From the sequence record NC_021529.2: a stretch of DNA of 64,000 nt. One strand, 5' to 3'. This document shows positions 13,095-61,648 of the stretch, piece by piece; the first letter of the stretch is position 1, and each line of letters opens with the position of its first letter. The translations under genes and the position numbers were made by a program. The notes below the pieces were generated by a model that saw nothing but the letters and a program-made list of their open reading frames with translations, was not told the DNA's origin and searched no databases.

Positions 13095-13115
13095 AGGGGC
13101 GAAAGCCCCTTTTTT
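13095..13115 (+). terminator. Intrinsic terminator after gene 30
   Basis: AGGGGC-GAAA-GCCCCT plus T run. Confidence 0.85.
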
Positions 13116-13117
13116 CG

Positions 13118-13125
13118 TATAAATA
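13118..13125 (+). promoter_or_regulatory. T4-type late promoter
   Basis: Exact TATAAATA, ATG 24 bp downstream. Confidence 0.8.
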
Positions 13126-13148: not shown

Positions 13149-14036
13149 ATGATTATTTTCGAACATCAAGACTCGCTTGTTGAAGCTTTTACGACACCTG
13201 CTCCGTATCGTTGGGCAGATGATAATAATATTGTGTTCAGAGTCGGGTCAACGAATTACCAGGCTAATATCAACTCATACGAGAACAGAAACACGCAGAG
13301 TCGAAATATAGACGTGTCATTTCAATGGCAGACTGAAAGCGGTAGATGGACGTTCACATTGAAAAAAAGTGATAATCCGAAAGATGCACTTACAGTGATC
13401 AGTACAATTCTGGCTGCTACATTCGAAAAAGAAGCAAAAGAGAAGCCAGATACGATTTCGTTTAGTGCGTTCACCGATGACAATGATAGAGACGCACAGA
13501 AGCGTTTCAAACTTTACAAACGAATTGCTGAGCGTTATGCAAAAGAGCGTAATTACACACTACAAGTTCATGATCGTTCTTTTCTTCTAACTAATAACGC
13601 GAAACCAAGTCAGATGAGACGATTCCCGAACGACGGCGTTATTGAAGAAGACGGTCTTGTTTATGCTGAATTCCCGCGTGTCAATGCGTTCACATGGGCT
13701 AAAATGTTCTGGCTTGACAATGCAGGTGATTACATCGACTTGTCTCTACCACATGGTCGTGTTAAGGTGACTCGAACATCAGAAGATGTAGTCACTGTCG
13801 ATGGGCGCAACGCAGAAGGCAAAATCGATAACTTAGATAGCTCTTATGTATGGCTGAGTATGCTTGGTGAGATTAAAGTTCGCACACGAACCGGTCGAGA
13901 ATTCACATTGTCTGAAAGGGGTGTTATACTTGACGCTGGTGACATGATTTTGTGTGACGATAAGACAATATATTACTTGTCAGATGAAGAAATGTTCGCT
14001 GATATTTGGGGTTACGATATTATCGAAATCGTATAA
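13149..14036 (+). CDS. Putative virion internal (ejected) protein, paralogue of 49992-50828
   Basis: Late promoter; N-terminus ...SLVE/AF; shares KDALTV, FSAF.D, KR..LYKR.AER motifs with 49992 ORF. Confidence 0.6.
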   Translation: MIIFEHQDSLVEAFTTPAPYRWADDNNIVFRVGSTNYQANINSYENRNTQSRNIDVSFQWQTESGRWTFTLKKSDNPKDALTVISTILAATFEKEAKEKPDTISFSAFTDDNDRDAQKRFKLYKRIAERYAKERNYTLQVHDRSFLLTNNAKPSQMRRFPNDGVIEEDGLVYAEFPRVNAFTWAKMFWLDNAGDYIDLSLPHGRVKVTRTSEDVVTVDGRNAEGKIDNLDSSYVWLSMLGEIKVRTRTGREFTLSERGVILDAGDMILCDDKTIYYLSDEEMFADIWGYDIIEIV

Positions 14037-14067: not shown

Positions 14068-15726
14068 TCATGGTGTTAGAGGACTACGCTCTTTAACCAA
14101 TCGTTCTTCGTCAACCGTTGGTTCGGCTGCACGCATGAAGTCAGCGACTTCAGTTAGTTCATGAATTCGTTCTTGTCGTTTACGTTCAGAAAGAACACTG
14201 AATTTTTCATGCTTGTTCTTTTTCTTCAGTCTGATGACTGCATCGAATTCAGAAAGTTGAATCAGCTCAGCTTCAAACAATGTATTGCGATTGATGATGA
14301 ATTCGCAATCACCTTTCTTCCCATGCTTACCTGTTGCAAGAATCGGCAACCCTTCAGCTTCGATTACAAACACAACGTTCAATTTCTTATCAGTTTCAAG
14401 CATATCTAGCATTGTTGATTTGCTATTTTTATCGATTGCATTCACGATAGTTTTCGATGATGATTCAACGAAGTTACATGCAACAATAGGGTTTGTTGAT
14501 GATGAGATAAACGCAGTAGACGCAAATACCCCAGATTCAAGAATCGCACCAACTCGCTTGCTGCTCATTTCAGCACCACGGTACAATGTCATTGCACTAG
14601 CAGATTTACCCGCCTCAGCAAACGCATAATCGAGACGCTTAATGATGTCTGATGCTTTATCAGATTCAATGCCGTGTACCAATGCTTCATTCACTTTCCA
14701 CGCATATCGCGACGCAGAATAGCGAGAAATTGCAGCTTGCGTAAGCGACCCAAGCCCAGCGAATGAATCTTCTTGCATCAATAGCATAGAAAGACGCTCA
14801 TATTGCGCTTCAAGAGCACGAGAACGCGATTCAAGTAAGCAGTTGAATACATCACTAGGGTTTTTAGATTCGTGCATGTACGAGTTGATAGAGTTAGCAA
14901 GAACTGGTAGCTCAAGATTCATGTCAATCAATCCTTGTGCAGCCATTGCAATTTTCGACTCAGATTCAGTTAATGCAATTTCAGTTAAACGCGCATTGTG
15001 TGATGTGCTGTGATGCGATTCAAGTTGCGGCATTTGAAGAACTGCGTTCGGAACACGAGCAGCAGGATTGTCGCCAACCCACGTATCAAGAACAACGTCG
15101 TCGTAATCATCATATTCAGCACCAGCAGTAACGATGATTGTTTTCTTGCTTGAAATGTCAGTTTCTTGCGACATTTTAGCAGCAATCATGTTTACCGTTT
15201 CTTCAGACGCTTCGAATAGCTTGTCAGCGTTGTATCCTGGTTTTGTGATGACGAAGTAGCTGAAATCATCAACCATTTCAGATGTACCATCGTTAACGAT
15301 TTTAGTCGTCTCGCAGCCATAGCGTAGCTTTTTGAATAGCGTTTTTACGCGCATGTCAAACATTTTACCACTGCCAAGCTTTTGAATTCGCATCGATACG
15401 ACGTTTGCACGACGACTAAGCATGAAGTCGTAAACAAGCGTTACGATAGTTTCAATTAGTTTTTGCTGATCGCCCATTTCACGAATAGTCAACCCGCCTT
15501 TCTTTCCGCGCATAGCAGAAACAGTGCAGAACCAGCTACGTTTGCCACGATTGCCGATGTCTGATTTGGTTTTAGTAGTGAACGAAACAACGATGTCCCT
15601 AGCTTCGCCTTTCATATCGATCACAAAGAATTTGTTTTCTTTGGTCGAGCGAGCCGGATAGTAGTCGTATGTCGCGCTCATGTTTTCTGTTAATTGTTGA
15701 TATCCAATCATTTTGTATAGACTCAC
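14068..15726 (-). CDS. alt: Alt-like NAD:protein ADP-ribosyltransferase
   Basis: TLYRG, FISSS and DCEFIINRN match the R-S-E ART motifs; next to gene 30 as in T4; start could be 15711. Confidence 0.85.
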   Translation of the reverse strand: MSLYKMIGYQQLTENMSATYDYYPARSTKENKFFVIDMKGEARDIVVSFTTKTKSDIGNRGKRSWFCTVSAMRGKKGGLTIREMGDQQKLIETIVTLVYDFMLSRRANVVSMRIQKLGSGKMFDMRVKTLFKKLRYGCETTKIVNDGTSEMVDDFSYFVITKPGYNADKLFEASEETVNMIAAKMSQETDISSKKTIIVTAGAEYDDYDDVVLDTWVGDNPAARVPNAVLQMPQLESHHSTSHNARLTEIALTESESKIAMAAQGLIDMNLELPVLANSINSYMHESKNPSDVFNCLLESRSRALEAQYERLSMLLMQEDSFAGLGSLTQAAISRYSASRYAWKVNEALVHGIESDKASDIIKRLDYAFAEAGKSASAMTLYRGAEMSSKRVGAILESGVFASTAFISSSTNPIVACNFVESSSKTIVNAIDKNSKSTMLDMLETDKKLNVVFVIEAEGLPILATGKHGKKGDCEFIINRNTLFEAELIQLSEFDAVIRLKKKNKHEKFSVLSERKRQERIHELTEVADFMRAAEPTVDEERLVKERSPLTP

Positions 15727-15744: not shown

Positions 15745-15752
15745 TATTTATG
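15745..15752 (-). promoter_or_regulatory. Late-promoter variant for alt
   Basis: CATAAATA on minus strand just upstream of alt. Confidence 0.6.
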
Positions 15753-19193: not shown

Positions 19194-20639
19194 ATGTTAG
19201 GTAACTTTGACTCATTTCTGAGTGAAAATCGCCGTCAAACTCAGGGTGGTAAAATCTACCCTAAGTTTGGTCAAGTTATTGTTGAGCTAGGCACTGCATC
19301 TACTGAGTTCAGCAACGGCAAAGGCGTTGAAACAACTATCGGCATGATGGAAAAGGCAAATGAGCTTAAATCTATCATGGAACAAAAGCTATGCGAAGAT
19401 CCAAACGTTAATCATAATATGTTTGACATGAATCTGAGTGAAAATGTAAGCACCGTCAACTTGCTTATGGAAAACGAATTCCTAGCAATGCCAGCGCATT
19501 CACTACAGCAAGTTAAGTCGATGATCATGTGTACTGAAGCGCGTCTTCCGAGTCTTGTGATCAAAGGTGGTGACTTGAATAAGGTTGTGACTGAAGCAAC
19601 TAAGCTTGGTTACAAGCAAAAAGACATCCACGTTGTTATCCCAATGAGCGAAATGAAAATCGTTCTTGCAGATTCGGATAAGTTGGTCATTGAATCACTT
19701 TCATTTGACGGTCTTACTGCGTCTGAAGTATTAGCAAAAGCAGCAACAATCAATCTTGGTGACGTATACGTTACAGTTGAAAGCGTGTCTAGCGAAGCTC
19801 AACTTTCAGAAATGAAAGAGATCAAGATCAAGACAGCGAATCGAGCAATGACTCTTGGATCTCTTAACCGTCATGTCATGGAGCACTTCGTTGTTAAAGA
19901 AGCGAAAGAAGTTTCATATGCGCGTGAAGTAGCAAAAGACACTGGTCTACCAATGCTAGAAGGGTTCAAGGCATACGATTTCAAACGTAATATCACTATG
20001 ATCGAACATGCTCAGAACGTATTCACTAAAGAGATTGCGCGTGCTCCGATGTCTGCAACTGCATGGCAAAACCTAGTTGACGTTAAAGAAGCGTACTTCG
20101 ATAACGGCTGGAAACTGAAACATAACAACACCAGCATTGTTCTTACAAATGCTCGTGACGCAATGCGTGCTAATCGTGTATGTGAAGAATATCGCGTTGA
20201 GCTATCGGAAGCGGGTTACCCACTTCTTGATATGGTAGCAATGATGGAACGTAAAGGCGTTAAGTACTTCGATTGTCAGTCATTTGCTAAAGCAATGGTT
20301 GAATTTGATGGTTGTGTTACACCAGAGCGTCAAACTGTTACTGCATTCGTTACTGAATCAGCATCAAATCGCGTATTCCATCCTCAGATGATGTCTAGTC
20401 TTCGCCCAGTAACTGAAATGGTTGATAGCGTAGATGAGCTTGTTCGCGCACTTGCTAATGACCAGTTTAGCGAATTCCGTGTTTCTGAGTCGATTGCTGA
20501 GTCAATGCTAGATAAAGAAACTCTTTACAGTATGATGGAAAAAATCATCAGTGAAGGCGTTGACGTTAATATCGATGGTAAACTAGTTGAATTCACTGTG
20601 TCTGACACTAAATACAGCATTAACATTGATATTAAGTAA
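19194..20639 (+). CDS. Hypothetical protein with CTS-like N-terminus, possibly a degenerate P-loop
   Basis: MLGNFDSFLSE/; GKIYPKFGQVIVELGTASTEFSNGKG. Confidence 0.6.
   Translation: MLGNFDSFLSENRRQTQGGKIYPKFGQVIVELGTASTEFSNGKGVETTIGMMEKANELKSIMEQKLCEDPNVNHNMFDMNLSENVSTVNLLMENEFLAMPAHSLQQVKSMIMCTEARLPSLVIKGGDLNKVVTEATKLGYKQKDIHVVIPMSEMKIVLADSDKLVIESLSFDGLTASEVLAKAATINLGDVYVTVESVSSEAQLSEMKEIKIKTANRAMTLGSLNRHVMEHFVVKEAKEVSYAREVAKDTGLPMLEGFKAYDFKRNITMIEHAQNVFTKEIARAPMSATAWQNLVDVKEAYFDNGWKLKHNNTSIVLTNARDAMRANRVCEEYRVELSEAGYPLLDMVAMMERKGVKYFDCQSFAKAMVEFDGCVTPERQTVTAFVTESASNRVFHPQMMSSLRPVTEMVDSVDELVRALANDQFSEFRVSESIAESMLDKETLYSMMEKIISEGVDVNIDGKLVEFTVSDTKYSINIDIK
20607..20614 (+). promoter_or_regulatory. 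Late-promoter variant
   Basis: ACTAAATA, ATG at 20648. Confidence 0.55.
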
Positions 20640-20647
20640 GGTGTGAC

Positions 20648-21295
20648 ATGAAAAAATTCGATACATTTTTGACTGAAGTTCAGAAATACAGCTCAGCAGC
20701 AACGTCTATCAAAGGCAAAGAAGTAGCAGCGTTAGTTAAATTGTTCAAGTCAGGCATGTTTGTGCCTGGCGGAACTGCACTTGACTACGGCGCAGGTAAA
20801 TACGGTCGTAACGCAGAGTTCTTGCGTTCTCAAGGTATTCGTACTTACGCATATGACAAGTTCAACGGTACGTCTGCTGACGGTTGGGATGCAGTTAGTT
20901 TGTCTGTGCCAAATGGCATGACATTCGACACTGGCTTTACTTCATACGTTCTGAACGTTGTTCCAGAGTCAGTTGAAGCTGAAATCGTTCGCGAAGTCGA
21001 GTCGTTAACAACTGGTAAAGTGTTCCACATCACTCGTGGTACTGACATTACACAAACTGTGTTTAATGTGATTTCTGGTAAATCTAAAAATGACGTGATG
21101 ATGCAGTTCGTTGCTCAAGAATATCCAGAGATTTATGGTCAGATTGTCGCTAACGGCGGTACTAAAGAATTAGCTAAAGAAATTGCAACTCGTGGTGTTG
21201 TAACAGCTAAAGACAGCTTTCAACGTATTCCAGACTTATCAAAGTACGGTTACAGAAAGTCTGGTTCAGGCGCATCTGTCGTGTGGACAAAATAA
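20648..21295 (+). CDS. Class I SAM-dependent methyltransferase with capsid-targeting-like N-terminus
   Basis: ALDYGAGKYG (motif I), YAYDKF, FTSYVLNVV; MKKFDTFLTE/ N-terminus. Confidence 0.8.
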   Translation: MKKFDTFLTEVQKYSSAATSIKGKEVAALVKLFKSGMFVPGGTALDYGAGKYGRNAEFLRSQGIRTYAYDKFNGTSADGWDAVSLSVPNGMTFDTGFTSYVLNVVPESVEAEIVREVESLTTGKVFHITRGTDITQTVFNVISGKSKNDVMMQFVAQEYPEIYGQIVANGGTKELAKEIATRGVVTAKDSFQRIPDLSKYGYRKSGSGASVVWTK

Positions 21296-40004: not shown

Positions 40005-40081
40005 ATAAAAACCCCATCGATGTCTCAATGGGGTTTTTCGTTTAATTCTAAATAGAATAAACAACATCAAAAGGTAATATA

Positions 40082-41746
40082 ATGAAACTGTTTACTGAAT
40101 TTTATCAAGAAGTGCGTCTTGACGAAATCTCAGACCGCGCCAATATCGATATTGATTGGGATTGGGGTCATGAGAACGGCACTGGCGAAACTTCAGCACG
40201 TTTTAACGCTGCTGGCGAGGATTTCAGCGTAAGCGTTGACGAAAATAATCCTGGTTATTTCACTATTTCGTTCCAAAACTCAGGTGGTTATTCACAGACT
40301 GGTCGCGCTGGTCACTCTGCGGCTGCTGTATTCTCTGGTGTATTGACTACACTACGTGAATTCACTGAGACGTATGAAGAAGAAATGGATAAAAAGCCAT
40401 ACGAATACGATTTCAGTGCTGCGTATGAGCTACCGAGAAATCATGAGTACTACGCTCTACAAAATAATCGCAGAGAAGCACAACGCTTAGACGAAGAAAG
40501 CAAGAAAAAGCTATTGAAAGATCTAATCTCTCGCCCGATGCTTTACTACGCACTATCATTGACGTTTGGTAAAGAATACGGTTACTCGACTGACATTAGT
40601 GATCGCTGGCTTGAGCGTCTAGCAGGTGGTGCTAACGATTTCCGCTCTGTTCGTAAGAACGTAACTCGTGCTATTCTTTCAATGAGTGACAACGATGTCA
40701 ATCAAGCACTTATGCAAATGAGTGGTTCAGTTGGCTTCACGCTTACAAACCAACATCAAAATTCATACGATTACGATGCTCCGTTCGGTCAAGCAAGTCT
40801 AGAAGACACGATTGACGATGCTGATCAATATCAAATCGAAGCATGGATTAATGACGGTCGCGAAGATGAAATTCTAGAACACGCAGATTGGCGAACACTA
40901 GTTCGTATCGCTGAATGGGGTCTGATGCACGATGAACTAATTTACCATGATGATGCGGACGTTCGAGCCGCAGTAATGCGCACGGATTATGAAATGGGTG
41001 ACAAGCTTGCACAATCAAGTGACCCTGATCATCGACAAGAAGCTGCTGAAAATGGGTTTTCTATCTGGGAACTTGTTCTTGACTCAGACGACGACGTTCG
41101 CGAAGCTGCGTGGGATTGGTCTTTTGAGAATGACGACGCAGATACACGAATCGACTATGCAAAACGTATCAAGAGCGAAATGGGTCGATCTATTGCAGAA
41201 GACTTCTGGGACAGAATGATTGATGATGTAGACGACTACGAAGACCGCGTTTACGTTGCTGAACAAGGCTATCGCCTTGAAGAACTAGTTGATGATCATG
41301 ACGAAGATGTTCGACAAGCAGCAATGAACTACTACTTCAACAATTACGGTTCTGAAGACGCTGTTGGATCAATTCTCGAATACGGTGATGCTTATCGTGA
41401 AGAGAACTTCGCATACATCATGGGTGGTAACTTCGGCCCATCTGCTGAAGAAAAAGCAATCGAACTTGCGAAAGAAAATGATGTAGATGTGAGCGAATAT
41501 GTTCGTACTTCAGACATCACATGGTACAAGTGGAATGATCCTGTTGCTGATATGAAAGTTGTCGATGAAGAAGGCACTGAATTTGATATTCAAATTACCG
41601 CGCAGGATGATGGTAACTTTACCATTGTCATTGACGGTGATGAAACTTCTGACATTCCATTCAGTGACATCTATAGTATTTTCAAGACTGAGTACGGCAT
41701 TAATATAGATGATTACACTTATGTGTACGATGATTTAAATAATTAA
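40082..41746 (+). CDS. Very acidic putative internal protein with HEAT-like repeats
   Basis: MKLFTEFYQEVRLDE/; L..D.D.DVR.AA repeats; TCTAAATA at 40047. Confidence 0.7.
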   Translation: MKLFTEFYQEVRLDEISDRANIDIDWDWGHENGTGETSARFNAAGEDFSVSVDENNPGYFTISFQNSGGYSQTGRAGHSAAAVFSGVLTTLREFTETYEEEMDKKPYEYDFSAAYELPRNHEYYALQNNRREAQRLDEESKKKLLKDLISRPMLYYALSLTFGKEYGYSTDISDRWLERLAGGANDFRSVRKNVTRAILSMSDNDVNQALMQMSGSVGFTLTNQHQNSYDYDAPFGQASLEDTIDDADQYQIEAWINDGREDEILEHADWRTLVRIAEWGLMHDELIYHDDADVRAAVMRTDYEMGDKLAQSSDPDHRQEAAENGFSIWELVLDSDDDVREAAWDWSFENDDADTRIDYAKRIKSEMGRSIAEDFWDRMIDDVDDYEDRVYVAEQGYRLEELVDDHDEDVRQAAMNYYFNNYGSEDAVGSILEYGDAYREENFAYIMGGNFGPSAEEKAIELAKENDVDVSEYVRTSDITWYKWNDPVADMKVVDEEGTEFDIQITAQDDGNFTIVIDGDETSDIPFSDIYSIFKTEYGINIDDYTYVYDDLNN

Positions 41747-43721: not shown

Positions 43722-44777
43722 TTATGGTCTGTAGATCATATGATCAGAGCCCATACGTTCCCAATCACCACTGTTCATGCGTCTTTTCATTTCATCGAAT
43801 AACGCAGGGTTAGCTCGAATATCGTTTAATGGTAGAGCAACAACACCTTCTGTTTTGTGAGCTAGTAACTCAAGTTTATCAAGCAGATCGCTTGATGTTC
43901 TACCGTCGTACTTGAATTCACTAAACCAATAACCAATCTTACTGAACTTACGATCTCTGGTGTATTTCACATCGAACCCTTTCAATGCATACAGCAAGCT
44001 ACTTTCTTTGCCATGAAACGGCTTTTTGTATTCGCTGTGTTCAGCACCAGCACGAGCAAGTAATCGTTTCTTAGCCTCTTCTGGTATATTGAACCAACCA
44101 TCGAAATTATTCTTAAATCGATTCATCCATGCTTCAGCAGTTGCAGGCGAGCCTTTAAACTGAGATTTCGTATCAGCAATTGCTTGTGCATATCGTGCGT
44201 TAATCTCATGAGAATAGTTCTGATATTCGTCGTGAGACGCTTTGTGACCGGCTTTAGCGTGTTTGACGAACTCTTTATCGATATAAGCTCTATTACGCCC
44301 TGAGTGTTGATACACGCCGTCTTCGTCGCGTGTCTCGAAGTCTTCTATATCACCAGAACGCCAGTTATCGTATGCATGTTGCAGTTCGTGCAATGCAGTA
44401 CTGTACATTTGTTCTTTCTTGACTCTGAACTTTGCCATAATCTGACTAACAGCAGTTACACCAGTGATGTCAACGGTGATTTGCAAGTTACCTGCTTCAC
44501 CAGCGTCTGGGTCGTGTAAAGCACCACGCCAAACACCCATTTCAGTTGGTGATTGATTGTCGAGCTTCAGATACGCGACGATACCACGTTCTAGCAATGC
44601 ATCGAATTTGCTTTCACCAGTTTTGATGTTCAGACTCTTGGTATTGATTGCAAGATTGTTCGGATCGAATGGTCTTGTTGATAATGCATATTCCAACTGT
44701 GTTTCAAGTCGGTCAACGATAAACTTTGCTGCGTACTCTAATGCACGCTGAGATTGAACGCTTTCAAAAATAATCAT
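43722..44777 (-). CDS. Zincin-like metallopeptidase, putative late/virion protein
   Basis: TALHELQHAYD (HExxH) and downstream HEINARY; ACTAAATA on minus strand at 44810-44817. Confidence 0.75.
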   Translation of the reverse strand: MIIFESVQSQRALEYAAKFIVDRLETQLEYALSTRPFDPNNLAINTKSLNIKTGESKFDALLERGIVAYLKLDNQSPTEMGVWRGALHDPDAGEAGNLQITVDITGVTAVSQIMAKFRVKKEQMYSTALHELQHAYDNWRSGDIEDFETRDEDGVYQHSGRNRAYIDKEFVKHAKAGHKASHDEYQNYSHEINARYAQAIADTKSQFKGSPATAEAWMNRFKNNFDGWFNIPEEAKKRLLARAGAEHSEYKKPFHGKESSLLYALKGFDVKYTRDRKFSKIGYWFSEFKYDGRTSSDLLDKLELLAHKTEGVVALPLNDIRANPALFDEMKRRMNSGDWERMGSDHMIYRP

Positions 44778-49701: not shown

Positions 49702-49995
49702 ATGAGAGAAGCTATTGCATTATTAAGCAACACAAAAATTGGATATACTGACATCAGCGCGTTTGGCGATCCAGTATTATTTGTTCATGCAGGTCGTGAG
49801 ACAGTACTAAAGGTACAATATACCGAAGACTGCTATTCGTTTTACGATTATCGAAGTAAATACTTGTATGAAGAACAGACAATCGATGATCTTGAGATTC
49901 ACCTCAAATCAATCGAAATCGGTCTAGACGACGATCTACCCTTGAATGGTAATGTCGATTTAGAAACGATACCAGATGGGGAATTTTTAGAGTGA
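49702..49995 (+). CDS. Hypothetical protein
   Basis: Operon packing. Confidence 0.6.
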   Translation: MREAIALLSNTKIGYTDISAFGDPVLFVHAGRETVLKVQYTEDCYSFYDYRSKYLYEEQTIDDLEIHLKSIEIGLDDDLPLNGNVDLETIPDGEFLE

Positions 49996-50828
49996 AATTT
50001 AGCGAATATCAAAACGAACTAAACGAAGCGTTTGACCGACCAGCACAGATCACAAATAGACGTGGAAATCAAAGTTATTTCATGATTGGTCAGAATGAAT
50101 ACATGATTGGTTTGTATTACGATGATTCCGAGAGAAAACTATCAGTTGATTTCATGATGAGACCGGCAGGCGAGTCATCATACTATTACACATTGGCAAA
50201 AGGCGACACTAAAGACGCATTGACTGTGTTCGCAACGGTGATTTCAGAAATCAAACGTAAAATGAAGACTGATATTGTAAATATTATCGAGTTTAGTGCA
50301 TTCGCTGATTCTGATAGCTCAGATGCTCGTAAACGTGAGCGATTGTACAAGCGCATGGCAGAACGATTCAGCAAAGAAATTGGGTTCAAACTATCTGCAA
50401 GTAGTGGAGACTTTGTTCTACATCGAACCAAAATAGTTGAAGCGCCAACTGGTTATGATACAGCGTGGGGAACTGAAACACTTGATGTCAATCTAATCAA
50501 TGACGCAGCGATTGTGAAAGTGACTGGTGGTGACGGTGAATGGCGTCTCGATGACTGGAATAAGCTAATCGTCAAAGACGGAAAAGTGACATTAACATCT
50601 GGATCAATCAACTCCGATGATGCGTGGTATGATGCATTCTTCGATCTTGAATGGGACGATGGTGATGAAGAGTGGATTGATGGCGAGCAAGAGATTGCGA
50701 TTATCAATGGCAAAGTATGGGTCATTAATGGCACTGAAATCACCATATGGAAGAGCATTTCAGATCTTGAAATGCAAAGTGAAGGTTTAACGCTATCAAG
50801 TACTACATTGCATACGTTGGGATATTAA
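49992..50828 (+). CDS. Putative virion internal protein, paralogue of 13149-14036
   Basis: MKFSEYQNELNE/AFD; shared KDALTV and KRERLYKRMAERF; acidic C-terminal domain. Confidence 0.65.
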   Translation: MKFSEYQNELNEAFDRPAQITNRRGNQSYFMIGQNEYMIGLYYDDSERKLSVDFMMRPAGESSYYYTLAKGDTKDALTVFATVISEIKRKMKTDIVNIIEFSAFADSDSSDARKRERLYKRMAERFSKEIGFKLSASSGDFVLHRTKIVEAPTGYDTAWGTETLDVNLINDAAIVKVTGGDGEWRLDDWNKLIVKDGKVTLTSGSINSDDAWYDAFFDLEWDDGDEEWIDGEQEIAIINGKVWVINGTEITIWKSISDLEMQSEGLTLSSTTLHTLGY

Positions 50829-61339: not shown

Positions 61340-61648
61340 ATGAAAACTTTCAATGAATTTTTAGCTGAAGCTCAACACATGTATGAGCTACCACCTGGGT
61401 ATGAAGTATTCGGTCTAGTAGATGTAGATGGGAAAGAGGTTGAACTCCATTCAGACGATGTGATGCGTGACGAATTAACAAGAGTTGCAAACGCACGTAA
61501 CGTAGCTATTGCAACTGGTGGTGTTTCTTCAGAAGAAGCAGGTGTATTAATCACCAAAGGCGGTAAAGAAGTTGATTACTTCCCGCATGAAGATAAAGCA
61601 AGTGGTCCACGCTTTAAAAACTTCGTGAAACGTCACTTCAAGGTCTAA
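61340..61648 (+). CDS. Putative internal head protein
   Basis: MKTFNEFLAE/ closely matches the T4 IP capsid-targeting sequence MKTYQEFIAE. Confidence 0.7.
   Translation: MKTFNEFLAEAQHMYELPPGYEVFGLVDVDGKEVELHSDDVMRDELTRVANARNVAIATGGVSSEEAGVLITKGGKEVDYFPHEDKASGPRFKNFVKRHFKV

Follow-up and report, generated by a model that had tools for sequence, protein, structure and literature searches.

The last 64 kb of the 247.5-kb genome of Vibrio phage nt-1 (NC_021529.2), a KVP40-like relative of T4, constitute the stretch analyzed here and are referred to as the window. Its open reading frame (ORF) 324 raises the question of what purpose is served by an N-terminal region that recurs in other proteins of the same phage. 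The injected proteins of T4 are the classic system of phage-head cargo, in which a tag of 10 residues loads foreign proteins into capsids; beyond the T-even phages, little is known about the cargo of T4-like phages. The initial annotation of the window proposed that ORF324, ORF383 and ORF364 are putative injected proteins sharing a paralogous N-terminal domain, which was thought to act as a carrier for variable C-terminal payloads. The analysis presented here leads to a modified answer. These three proteins and the ADP-ribosyltransferase (ART) Alt, together with ORF252, which is encoded outside the window, probably form one family of phage-head cargo, in which a short leader is followed by a domain of about 140 residues with a predicted GNAT (Gcn5-related N-acetyltransferase) fold. 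Packaging into the head is considered probable because leader and domain are shared and because the counterparts of all members were found in the particles of a related phage. Four independent lines point to head cargo, namely, the membership of Alt, the virion proteome of phage 6E35.1a, a late promoter at ORF324, and N-termini that resemble the capsid-targeting sequence (CTS) of T4.

Clear homology links the N-termini of ORF324 and ORF383. Residues 1-147 of the former and 1-143 of the latter align with 35% identity (BLASTP E 1e-20), and the motifs by which the similarity was originally noticed (EAF..PA, KDALTV, FSAF, and KR..LYKR.AER) are all located inside this alignment. ORF364, for which a weaker version of the region had been proposed, is a distant member that is recognized by profile methods. 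With BLASTP it reached only an E value of 0.007 against ORF324 and was aligned in the wrong register with ORF383. A profile-profile comparison with the family alignment of 10 sequences (A1) gave an E value of 1.2e-4 and was colinear across the whole domain, and hhalign returned 97.0% (E 1.2e-10, 131 columns). The segments AAAVFSGVL, YDFSA, SRPMLY, and FGKEYGY of ORF364 land on homologous columns, and its domain contains an insertion of approximately 30 residues at the junction of strand 5 and helix 4. The profile hidden Markov model (HMM) that had been suggested as a check gave a divided result: the HMM of the 10 sequences detected neither ORF364 nor Alt, whereas a broad profile built from 315 domain instances detected residues 12-172 of ORF364 (HMMER, E 1.4e-8) and the N-terminus of nt-1 Alt (E 6.7e-5). 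Both proteins thus reach significance with the broad profile only. For Alt, hhalign of the 10-sequence alignment against a single sequence was negative (0.9%); when the N-termini of three Vibrio-phage Alt proteins were compared with the family, 92.6% was obtained (E 4.5e-7, 120 columns). Sequence comparison therefore places ORF324, ORF383, ORF364, Alt, and ORF252 in one domain family, so that the paralogy of the three N-terminal domains stands and the set turns out to be larger than three.

The family is widespread in the relatives of nt-1. Besides Alt, four detectable copies are present in each of KVP40 and VH7D, and tblastn located the domain at 142 places in 49 phage records, which belong to Vibrio phages without exception. 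A word-index protein search with the N-terminal domain retrieved the query as its sole match, and KVP40 and VH7D were the only matches in scans of IMG/VR. T4 Alt was considered as a further carrier of the domain and rejected. Its N-terminal 175 residues aligned with the family profile at positions 2-11 only (E 0.026) and did not match the Vibrio-phage Alt N-termini in a profile comparison; given this lack of a significant profile link, the domain is not assigned to T4 Alt. T4 alt.-1 and alt.-2 likewise showed no significant similarity to the family.

Structure prediction provided information on the fold. The AlphaFold2 model of ORF324 has a predicted local distance difference test score (pLDDT) of 89.2, with low values for residues 1-8, and its N-terminal domain has the order beta-beta-beta-beta-alpha-beta-alpha-beta-beta. 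An exhaustive structural comparison with the PDB yielded GNAT-fold proteins for nearly all of the 50 best matches, including p300, Naa50, NatB, EctA, and RimI, with Z scores of 6.1-7.3 and root mean square deviations of about 3.1-3.6 A over about 100-134 residues. Foldseek gave weak matches, which were likewise GNATs. The shared domain is thus predicted to have the GNAT core fold, with a mixed sheet and a beta4-alpha3-beta5-alpha4 core. In these model-based comparisons, the weight of the assignment rests on the uniformity of the match list and not on the Z values, which are only middling and therefore support membership in the fold, not a function. At the sequence level, neither the GNAT models of Pfam nor the chains of the PDB were matched (no PDB match below E 0.2 for the 10-sequence profile). 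The domain thus shares with the GNAT superfamily the order of its secondary-structure elements and structural matches that are almost exclusively GNATs, but differs in that the canonical helices alpha1 and alpha2 are missing from the ORF324 model, in the absence of the pyrophosphate-binding loop from ORF324 and ORF383, and in the lack of a sequence match.

The N-termini upstream of this fold resemble those of T4 head cargo. All four proteins of the window start with leaders that end in L-x-E: MIIFEHQDSLVE in ORF324 (LVE-12), MKFSEYQNELNE in ORF383 (LNE-12), MKLFTEFYQEVRLDE in ORF364 (LDE-15), and MIGYQQLTE in Alt (LTE-9). As in the CTS-bearing cargo of T4, these leaders are short, similar to MKTYQEFIAE, and end in (L/I)-x-E, which is the cleavage motif of the gp21 protease. 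In the T4 genome, ipII and ipIII both start with MKTYQEFIAE (IAE-10), and 10 residues have been found to suffice for capsid targeting in T4 (PMC9026906). Across the 315 instances, a [L/I/V]-x-E motif opens the domain, with L, I, or V at position 1 in 92% and E in 99%. In T4 Alt, gp21 cleaves at ITE-6, with LFD following immediately (PMC5694885), and the family motif, [LIV]-x-E followed by [AL]-F-D, lines up with this site (ITE-6|LFD). Since the complete N-terminal domain of T4 Alt shows no significant relationship to the family, this alignment is a lead only.

Evidence for packaging comes from a published mass-spectrometric analysis of the particles of phage 6E35.1a, a relative of nt-1 (PMC12028318, Table S4 and gene table), in which orthologues of all five proteins were detected. 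In spectral counts of two replicates, the counterpart of Alt (VP6E351A_0095, PHROG 802) reached 122/233, that of ORF364 (VP6E351A_0134, PHROG 13195) 58/109, that of ORF383 (VP6E351A_0154, PHROG 6387) 37/51, that of ORF324 (VP6E351A_0094, PHROG 6387, adjoining ligase and alt) 16/61, and that of ORF252 (VP6E351A_0018, PHROG 16075) 9/14 (PMC12028318). The three hypothetical proteins of the window and their 6E35.1a orthologues are 42%, 49%, and 64% identical over their full length. With 94 of about 442 proteins detected, a detection of five out of five by chance would have a probability of approximately 4e-4. In T4, Alt itself becomes part of the prohead core, is processed by gp21, and leaves the head together with the DNA (PMC9026906, PMC5694885).

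The expression signals of ORF324 agree with a late product. The gene is flanked by the DNA ligase (gp30) gene and the convergent alt, an order that is retained in KVP40 and 6E35.1a, and is preceded by an intrinsic terminator and a T4-type late promoter, TATAAATA (Table 1). The exact promoter sequence occurs only three times in the window, and the other two copies precede gp24 and segD. This terminator-then-promoter cassette is kept in KVP40, VH7D, and 6E35.1a, hence in four phages including nt-1, and the sequence TATAAATACTTTCATTTA is conserved upstream of ORF324 orthologues whose proteins share just 42-55% identity. ORF324 thus has a predicted, conserved late (gp55-dependent) promoter. Together with the particle detection in 6E35.1a and the T4-like leaders ending in L-x-E, this promoter lends support to the initial designation of these proteins as putatively injected.

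The C-terminal parts are less diverse than originally assumed. The claim that they differ holds for ORF364 compared to the others but not for ORF324 compared to ORF383, which are remote homologues there too. No BLASTP similarity exists between the latter two C-terminal halves. Each protein matches PHROG 6387 along its full length, and hhalign connects both to the C-terminal half of the KVP40.0115 type (306 aa), with 89% (E 2.5e-6) for ORF324 and 65% (E 6e-5) for ORF383; the direct comparison of the ORF324 type with ORF383 gave an E value of 0.008. An alignment of the three types of C-terminal half (ORF324, ORF383, and KVP40.0115) contains six invariant columns. Based on the PHROG match, these links, and the invariant columns, ORF324 and ORF383 are full-length paralogues, in which the second domain has diverged faster than the first. 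The C-terminal domain of ORF324 was modeled with a pLDDT of 88.7. A search against PDB-wide structures gave no credible match (best Z 3.8), and the ESM Atlas offered nothing usable for this fold; the domain resembles stand-alone uncharacterized proteins in BFVD (TM score 0.56-0.69), among them proteins of phi-pp2, Erwinia phage pEa_SNUABM_5, and Dickeya phage JA13. The possibility that the C-terminal half of ORF324 or ORF383, or the N-terminal half of ORF252, is a degenerate second copy of the shared domain was rejected (hhalign <=0.2%).

In the two other members of the window, the domain is followed by different modules. The C-terminal part of Alt is an R-S-E ADP-ribosyltransferase (PHROG 802). 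ORF364 continues into an acidic part with HEAT-like repeats, in which D-x-D-x-D-V-R-x-A-A occurs three times, and its orthologue in phage 1.081.O is annotated as an armadillo-like helical protein. The C-terminal 75 or so residues of ORF364 (41515-41746) form a beta-rich extension that is found in nt-1 (554 aa) and 6E35.1a (562 aa). The KVP40 orthologue, an open frame of 494 aa, is devoid of this extension, and the match in VH7D is interrupted by a TAA stop.

The domain of nt-1 belongs to a much larger group of proteins. When the family profile was searched against 1.84 billion cluster representatives, 3043 matched at E<=1e-3 and 564 at E<=1e-10. Among the best 150 matches, the domain occurs singly, in 2-5 head-to-tail copies, or embedded in proteins of up to 2215 residues, and the tandem arrays are common. 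All nine representatives scanned first scored above the curated cut-off (27 bits) of Pfam DUF6934 (PF22028), and 36 of 43 long representatives matched this family at E<=1e-4. ORF324, ORF383, and ORF364 did not match DUF6934 at E<=0.1, and Alt (15.6 bits, E 0.017), ORF252 (19.1 bits), and KVP40.0115 (21.8 bits) remained below its cut-off. The broad profile that detected ORF364 and Alt was built from these relatives. By transitive homology, the nt-1 domain is a divergent phage branch of DUF6934: the order of secondary-structure elements and the conserved F..A...SR..LY core are common to both, but the nt-1 proteins themselves stay below the curated cut-off. No paper describing DUF6934 was found in the literature searched.

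Partner domains in the long relatives include GNAT (6 of 43), Zeta-toxin/AAA_33, PolyA_pol+HD, GGACT, and amidoligase; at the level of the superfamily, ART is also among the enzymes fused to the domain, beside nucleotidyltransferase-HD. Every genomic context inspected was that of a large phage. The member of 2215 aa is encoded directly after a terminase, a portal-2H phosphoesterase fusion, and two GNAT genes, and further relatives lie on phage contigs of 210-266 kb. Others adjoin giant proteins with AAA/SAM-lyase, NUDIX, Zeta-toxin, or ParB-methylase domains. On a metagenomic phage contig of 266 kb, a relative in which the domain is repeated five times in tandem is located directly upstream of a HEAT-repeat protein, an arrangement that echoes the domain-HEAT fusion in ORF364. 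A comparable setting was described for polyvalent proteins (Iyer et al. 2017, PMC5512222). These and the MuF- or portal-fused effectors (PMC5512222) are large phage proteins of several domains, for which packaging and injection have been predicted. Similarly, relatives of the domain are parts of proteins of 1000-2200 aa that contain GNAT, Zeta-toxin, nucleotidyltransferase-HD, and other enzyme domains and adjoin giant multidomain proteins, in one case after a portal-2H fusion. The nt-1 members differ from them in being small, with two or three domains.

By analogy with Alt and the internal proteins (IPs) of T4, the cargo proteins of nt-1 would be synthesized late and incorporated into the prohead core. 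The prohead protease may then trim them after the conserved Glu, and the trimmed proteins would remain in the filled head and probably exit with the DNA at infection. In the host, Alt would ADP-ribosylate host proteins and ORF364 would offer an acidic, HEAT-like binding surface; ORF324 and ORF383 would contribute a second, uncharacterized alpha/beta domain behind the shared one.

A number of observations weigh against this reading. Internal repeats and C-terminal copies of the domain likewise begin with L-x-E, so that this motif may be structural and not a cut site. The N-terminal domain of T4 Alt shows no significant profile relation to the family. The particle data were obtained for the related phage 6E35.1a, not for nt-1, from a preparation precipitated with polyethylene glycol (PEG). 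Likely contaminants, such as ligase, thymidylate synthase, GTP cyclohydrolase, and spanins, appear in its protein list at 1-23 counts (PMC12028318), a range that includes the counts of the ORF252 orthologue. The late-promoter motifs of Alt and ORF364 are one-mismatch versions only. The GTG start of ORF383 overlaps the stop of ORF382 (GTGA); this gene lacks a separate promoter, and its translation is coupled to that of the upstream genes in an otherwise early-looking cluster. Within 6 kb upstream on the same strand, allowing up to one mismatch, no late promoter was found for it save three copies of TACAAATA.

Packaging would also be compatible with a different role of the domain, which may itself be the working part of these proteins. 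In this possible, if tentative, alternative, the short leader alone would target the protein to the head, as in T4, and the domain, once delivered, would act on host targets as a GNAT-type module, either active, as an acyl-CoA-dependent transferase, or ligand-binding. The family consensus (..lnEaFD.PY..W ... F ... TG.GDafrVFATV ... P..I.FsA ... SR.kLY.R ... GY) recalls GNAT motifs A and B, and a Tyr in the region of these motifs is the general acid in many GNATs. The most conserved positions of the 315 instances fall in this part, with TG.GD located before helix 3 and R102 (94%), L105 (94%), and Y106 (99%) following; E4 (99%) and G62 (81%) are also conserved. In the KVP40-type family, E12, R119, and Y123 are invariant and L10 is nearly so, and ORF364 retains SRPMLY. 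These near-invariant E, R, and Y residues could, judging from conservation, mark a cofactor or active site. Known enzymes frequently contain GNAT domains duplicated in tandem, and two such enzymes, Eis and FemX, are among the structural matches; genuine GNAT domains occur in the same protein in the 6 long relatives mentioned above; and nt-1 has proteins with a leader yet without the domain. Conservation of the corresponding features is incomplete, however. In the region of the loop that binds the pyrophosphate of acetyl-CoA (Q/R-x-x-G-x-G/A, between beta4 and alpha3), where the superfamily has TG.GD and ORF364 has TGRAGH, the G-x-G is missing in ORF324 (KKSDNPKD) and ORF383 (AKGDTKD), and Alt possesses neither R102 nor Y106. 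The lack of alpha1-alpha2 in the model, the middling Z scores of 6-7, and the lack of a sequence match to any solved GNAT also speak against a working module.

The original proposal of a modular carrier or targeting unit of approximately 140 residues with swapped, unrelated payloads, similar to polymorphic effectors, appears doubtful. It agrees with the position of the domain in front of an ART in Alt, of HEAT-like repeats in ORF364, and of an alpha/beta domain in ORF324 and ORF383, with the virion association in 6E35.1a of all members examined, and with the superfamily fusions, so that the idea of variable payloads retains support at that level (ART, GNAT, Zeta toxin, nucleotidyltransferase-HD, GGACT, and amidoligase) but fails for the full-length paralogues ORF324 and ORF383, whose C-terminal halves are homologous. 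The occurrence of the domain at the C-terminus (ORF252 type) and in arrays of up to five copies is unusual for a targeting tag. The leader alone is found on other candidate cargo of nt-1, namely, ORF403, the methyltransferase ORF332, and the zincin ORF369, and 10 residues are enough in T4 (PMC9026906). No immunity genes are apparent, although no analysis aimed at them was made; the downstream genes are the convergent alt for ORF324 and small hypotheticals for ORF364 and ORF383.

Rather unlikely is a broader scenario in which the DUF6934-like unit is a general cargo unit of large phages that is processed by the prohead protease. If the conserved Glu were the P1 residue of a maturation cut, the tandem arrays would be polyproteins, cut in the prohead to proteins of about 140 residues, and the 10-residue CTS of T4 and the ITE-6|LFD start of its Alt would be the surviving leader of an ancestral unit. 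Lastly, it is very improbable that these are ordinary, unpackaged cytoplasmic phage proteins carried over by their abundance into the PEG-precipitated preparation, which does contain metabolic enzymes and would fit the location of ORF364 and ORF383 in long plus-strand clusters with replication and nucleotide-metabolism genes, since five of five members were detected, four of them at 16-233 counts, which are comparable to those of genuine head and tail proteins and mostly exceed those of the evident contaminants; in addition, T4 is known to package Alt (PMC9026906, PMC5694885), the late promoter of ORF324 is conserved, and the N-termini resemble capsid-targeting sequences.

The reading as leader-bearing head cargo can be compared with characterized systems. 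As with the head cargo of T4 (IPI-III and Alt, from which gp21 removes the CTS), Alt itself belongs to the nt-1 family, ORF324 has a late promoter, orthologues are found in virions, and the proteins vary between related phages. In contrast to T4, the nt-1 leader runs into a conserved, folded domain that is absent from the T4 IPs, the T4 Alt N-terminal domain is not linked to the family by profile, and the nt-1 proteins are acidic to neutral (isoelectric point [pI] 4.1-6.2), whereas T4-type IPs are basic (PMC9026906). The inner-head paralogues of phiKZ and SPN3US also have conserved N-termini that are cut after a Glu at a short motif (PMC5694885); compared by description, these ejection proteins differ in their protease motif, A/S-x-E, and in their protein families.

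Capsid-targeted cargo and Alt were known before, and the 6E35.1a virion proteome, in which these proteins are listed as hypotheticals, has been published. No description was found in the literature searched of a GNAT-fold, DUF6934-related domain shared by Alt and these proteins, nor of the family size, its architectures, or the conserved L-x-E boundary. The results tie Alt and several virion-associated hypotheticals of KVP40-type vibriophages to one domain family, and a Pfam domain of unknown function gains a fold and a likely setting in phage-head cargo. The family is large, with over 3000 clusters, and every context inspected was a large phage. If L-x-E were indeed the protease site, the motif could serve as a rule to predict which proteins of uncultured large phages are head cargo and how they are processed. 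Direct tests are possible in V. natriegens, a convenient host.

Table 1. Features of the ORF324, ORF364, ORF383, and alt loci of phage nt-1 (window coordinates unless marked as record)
Feature	Position	Strand	Remarks
ORF324	13149-14036 (record 196660-197547)	+	295 aa, annotated hypothetical
ORF324 leader MIIFEHQDSLVE	13149..13184	+	ends in L-x-E, candidate prohead-protease site
ORF324 N-terminal DUF6934-like domain, predicted GNAT fold	13149..13595	+	residues 1-149
ORF324 C-terminal alpha/beta domain	13596..14036	+	remote homologue of the ORF383 C-terminal half
Intrinsic terminator hairpin GGGGCGAAAGCCCC and T-run	13096..13115	+	3' of the DNA ligase gene
T4-type late promoter TATAAATA (predicted)	13118..13125	+	24 nt upstream of the ORF324 ATG
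alt	14068-15711	-	Alt-type ADP-ribosyltransferase, PHROG 802
Alt domain copy, degenerate	15304-15711	-	residues 1 to about 136, leader MIGYQQLTE
CATAAATA, one-mismatch late-promoter-like motif	15745..15752	-	upstream of alt; kept in KVP40 and 6E35.1a
ORF364	40082-41746	+	554 aa, annotated hypothetical
ORF364 leader and N-terminal DUF6934-like domain	40082..40606	+	residues 1-175
ORF364 acidic C-terminal part, HEAT-like repeats	40607..41746	+	weak Pfam HEAT_2/HEAT matches; pI 4.05
TCTAAATA, one-mismatch late-promoter-like motif	40047..40054	+	after a terminator, upstream of ORF364; kept in KVP40 and D485
ORF383	49992-50828	+	278 aa, GTG start, annotated hypothetical
ORF383 leader and N-terminal DUF6934-like domain	49992..50435	+	PHROG 6387 and 27801
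ORF383 C-terminal domain	50436..50828	+	remote homologue of the ORF324 C-terminal half
ORF252	record 151654-152574		outside the window; domain C-terminal

Several further observations concern these loci and other proteins of nt-1. ORF252 is located between gp23 and uvsW, in the company of two genes with the annotation prohead protease inhibitor (Inh-like), and its N-terminal half of 160 residues is highly conserved in nt-1, KVP40, and VH7D and unrelated to the shared domain. In nt-1 Alt, HELTE is found 26 residues from the C-terminus and is reminiscent of LTE-619, the C-terminal gp21 processing site of T4 Alt (PMC5694885). In the T4 record NC_000866 (123065-125502), alt.-1 and alt.-2 are described as the product of an old duplication that involved the first part of alt; according to this annotation, a duplication of the Alt N-terminus lies beside alt in T4 too, which parallels the position of ORF324 next to alt in nt-1. 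Leader-like starts in front of proteins without the DUF6934-like domain were noted for the methyltransferase ORF332 (20648-21295, +; MKKFDTFLTE), ORF331 (19194-20639, +; MLGNFDSFLSE), and the zincin-like ORF369 (43722-44777, -; MIIFESVQSQRALE, ending in L-x-E). The virion list of 6E35.1a also includes VP6E351A_0103, a hypothetical protein of 24 kDa (PMC12028318). The hypothetical protein ORF403 (61340-61648, +; 102 aa) starts with MKTFNEFLAEA, compared with MKTYQEFIAEA in T4 IPII and IPIII, and this near identity to the T4 capsid-targeting sequence makes it a candidate small internal protein of nt-1.

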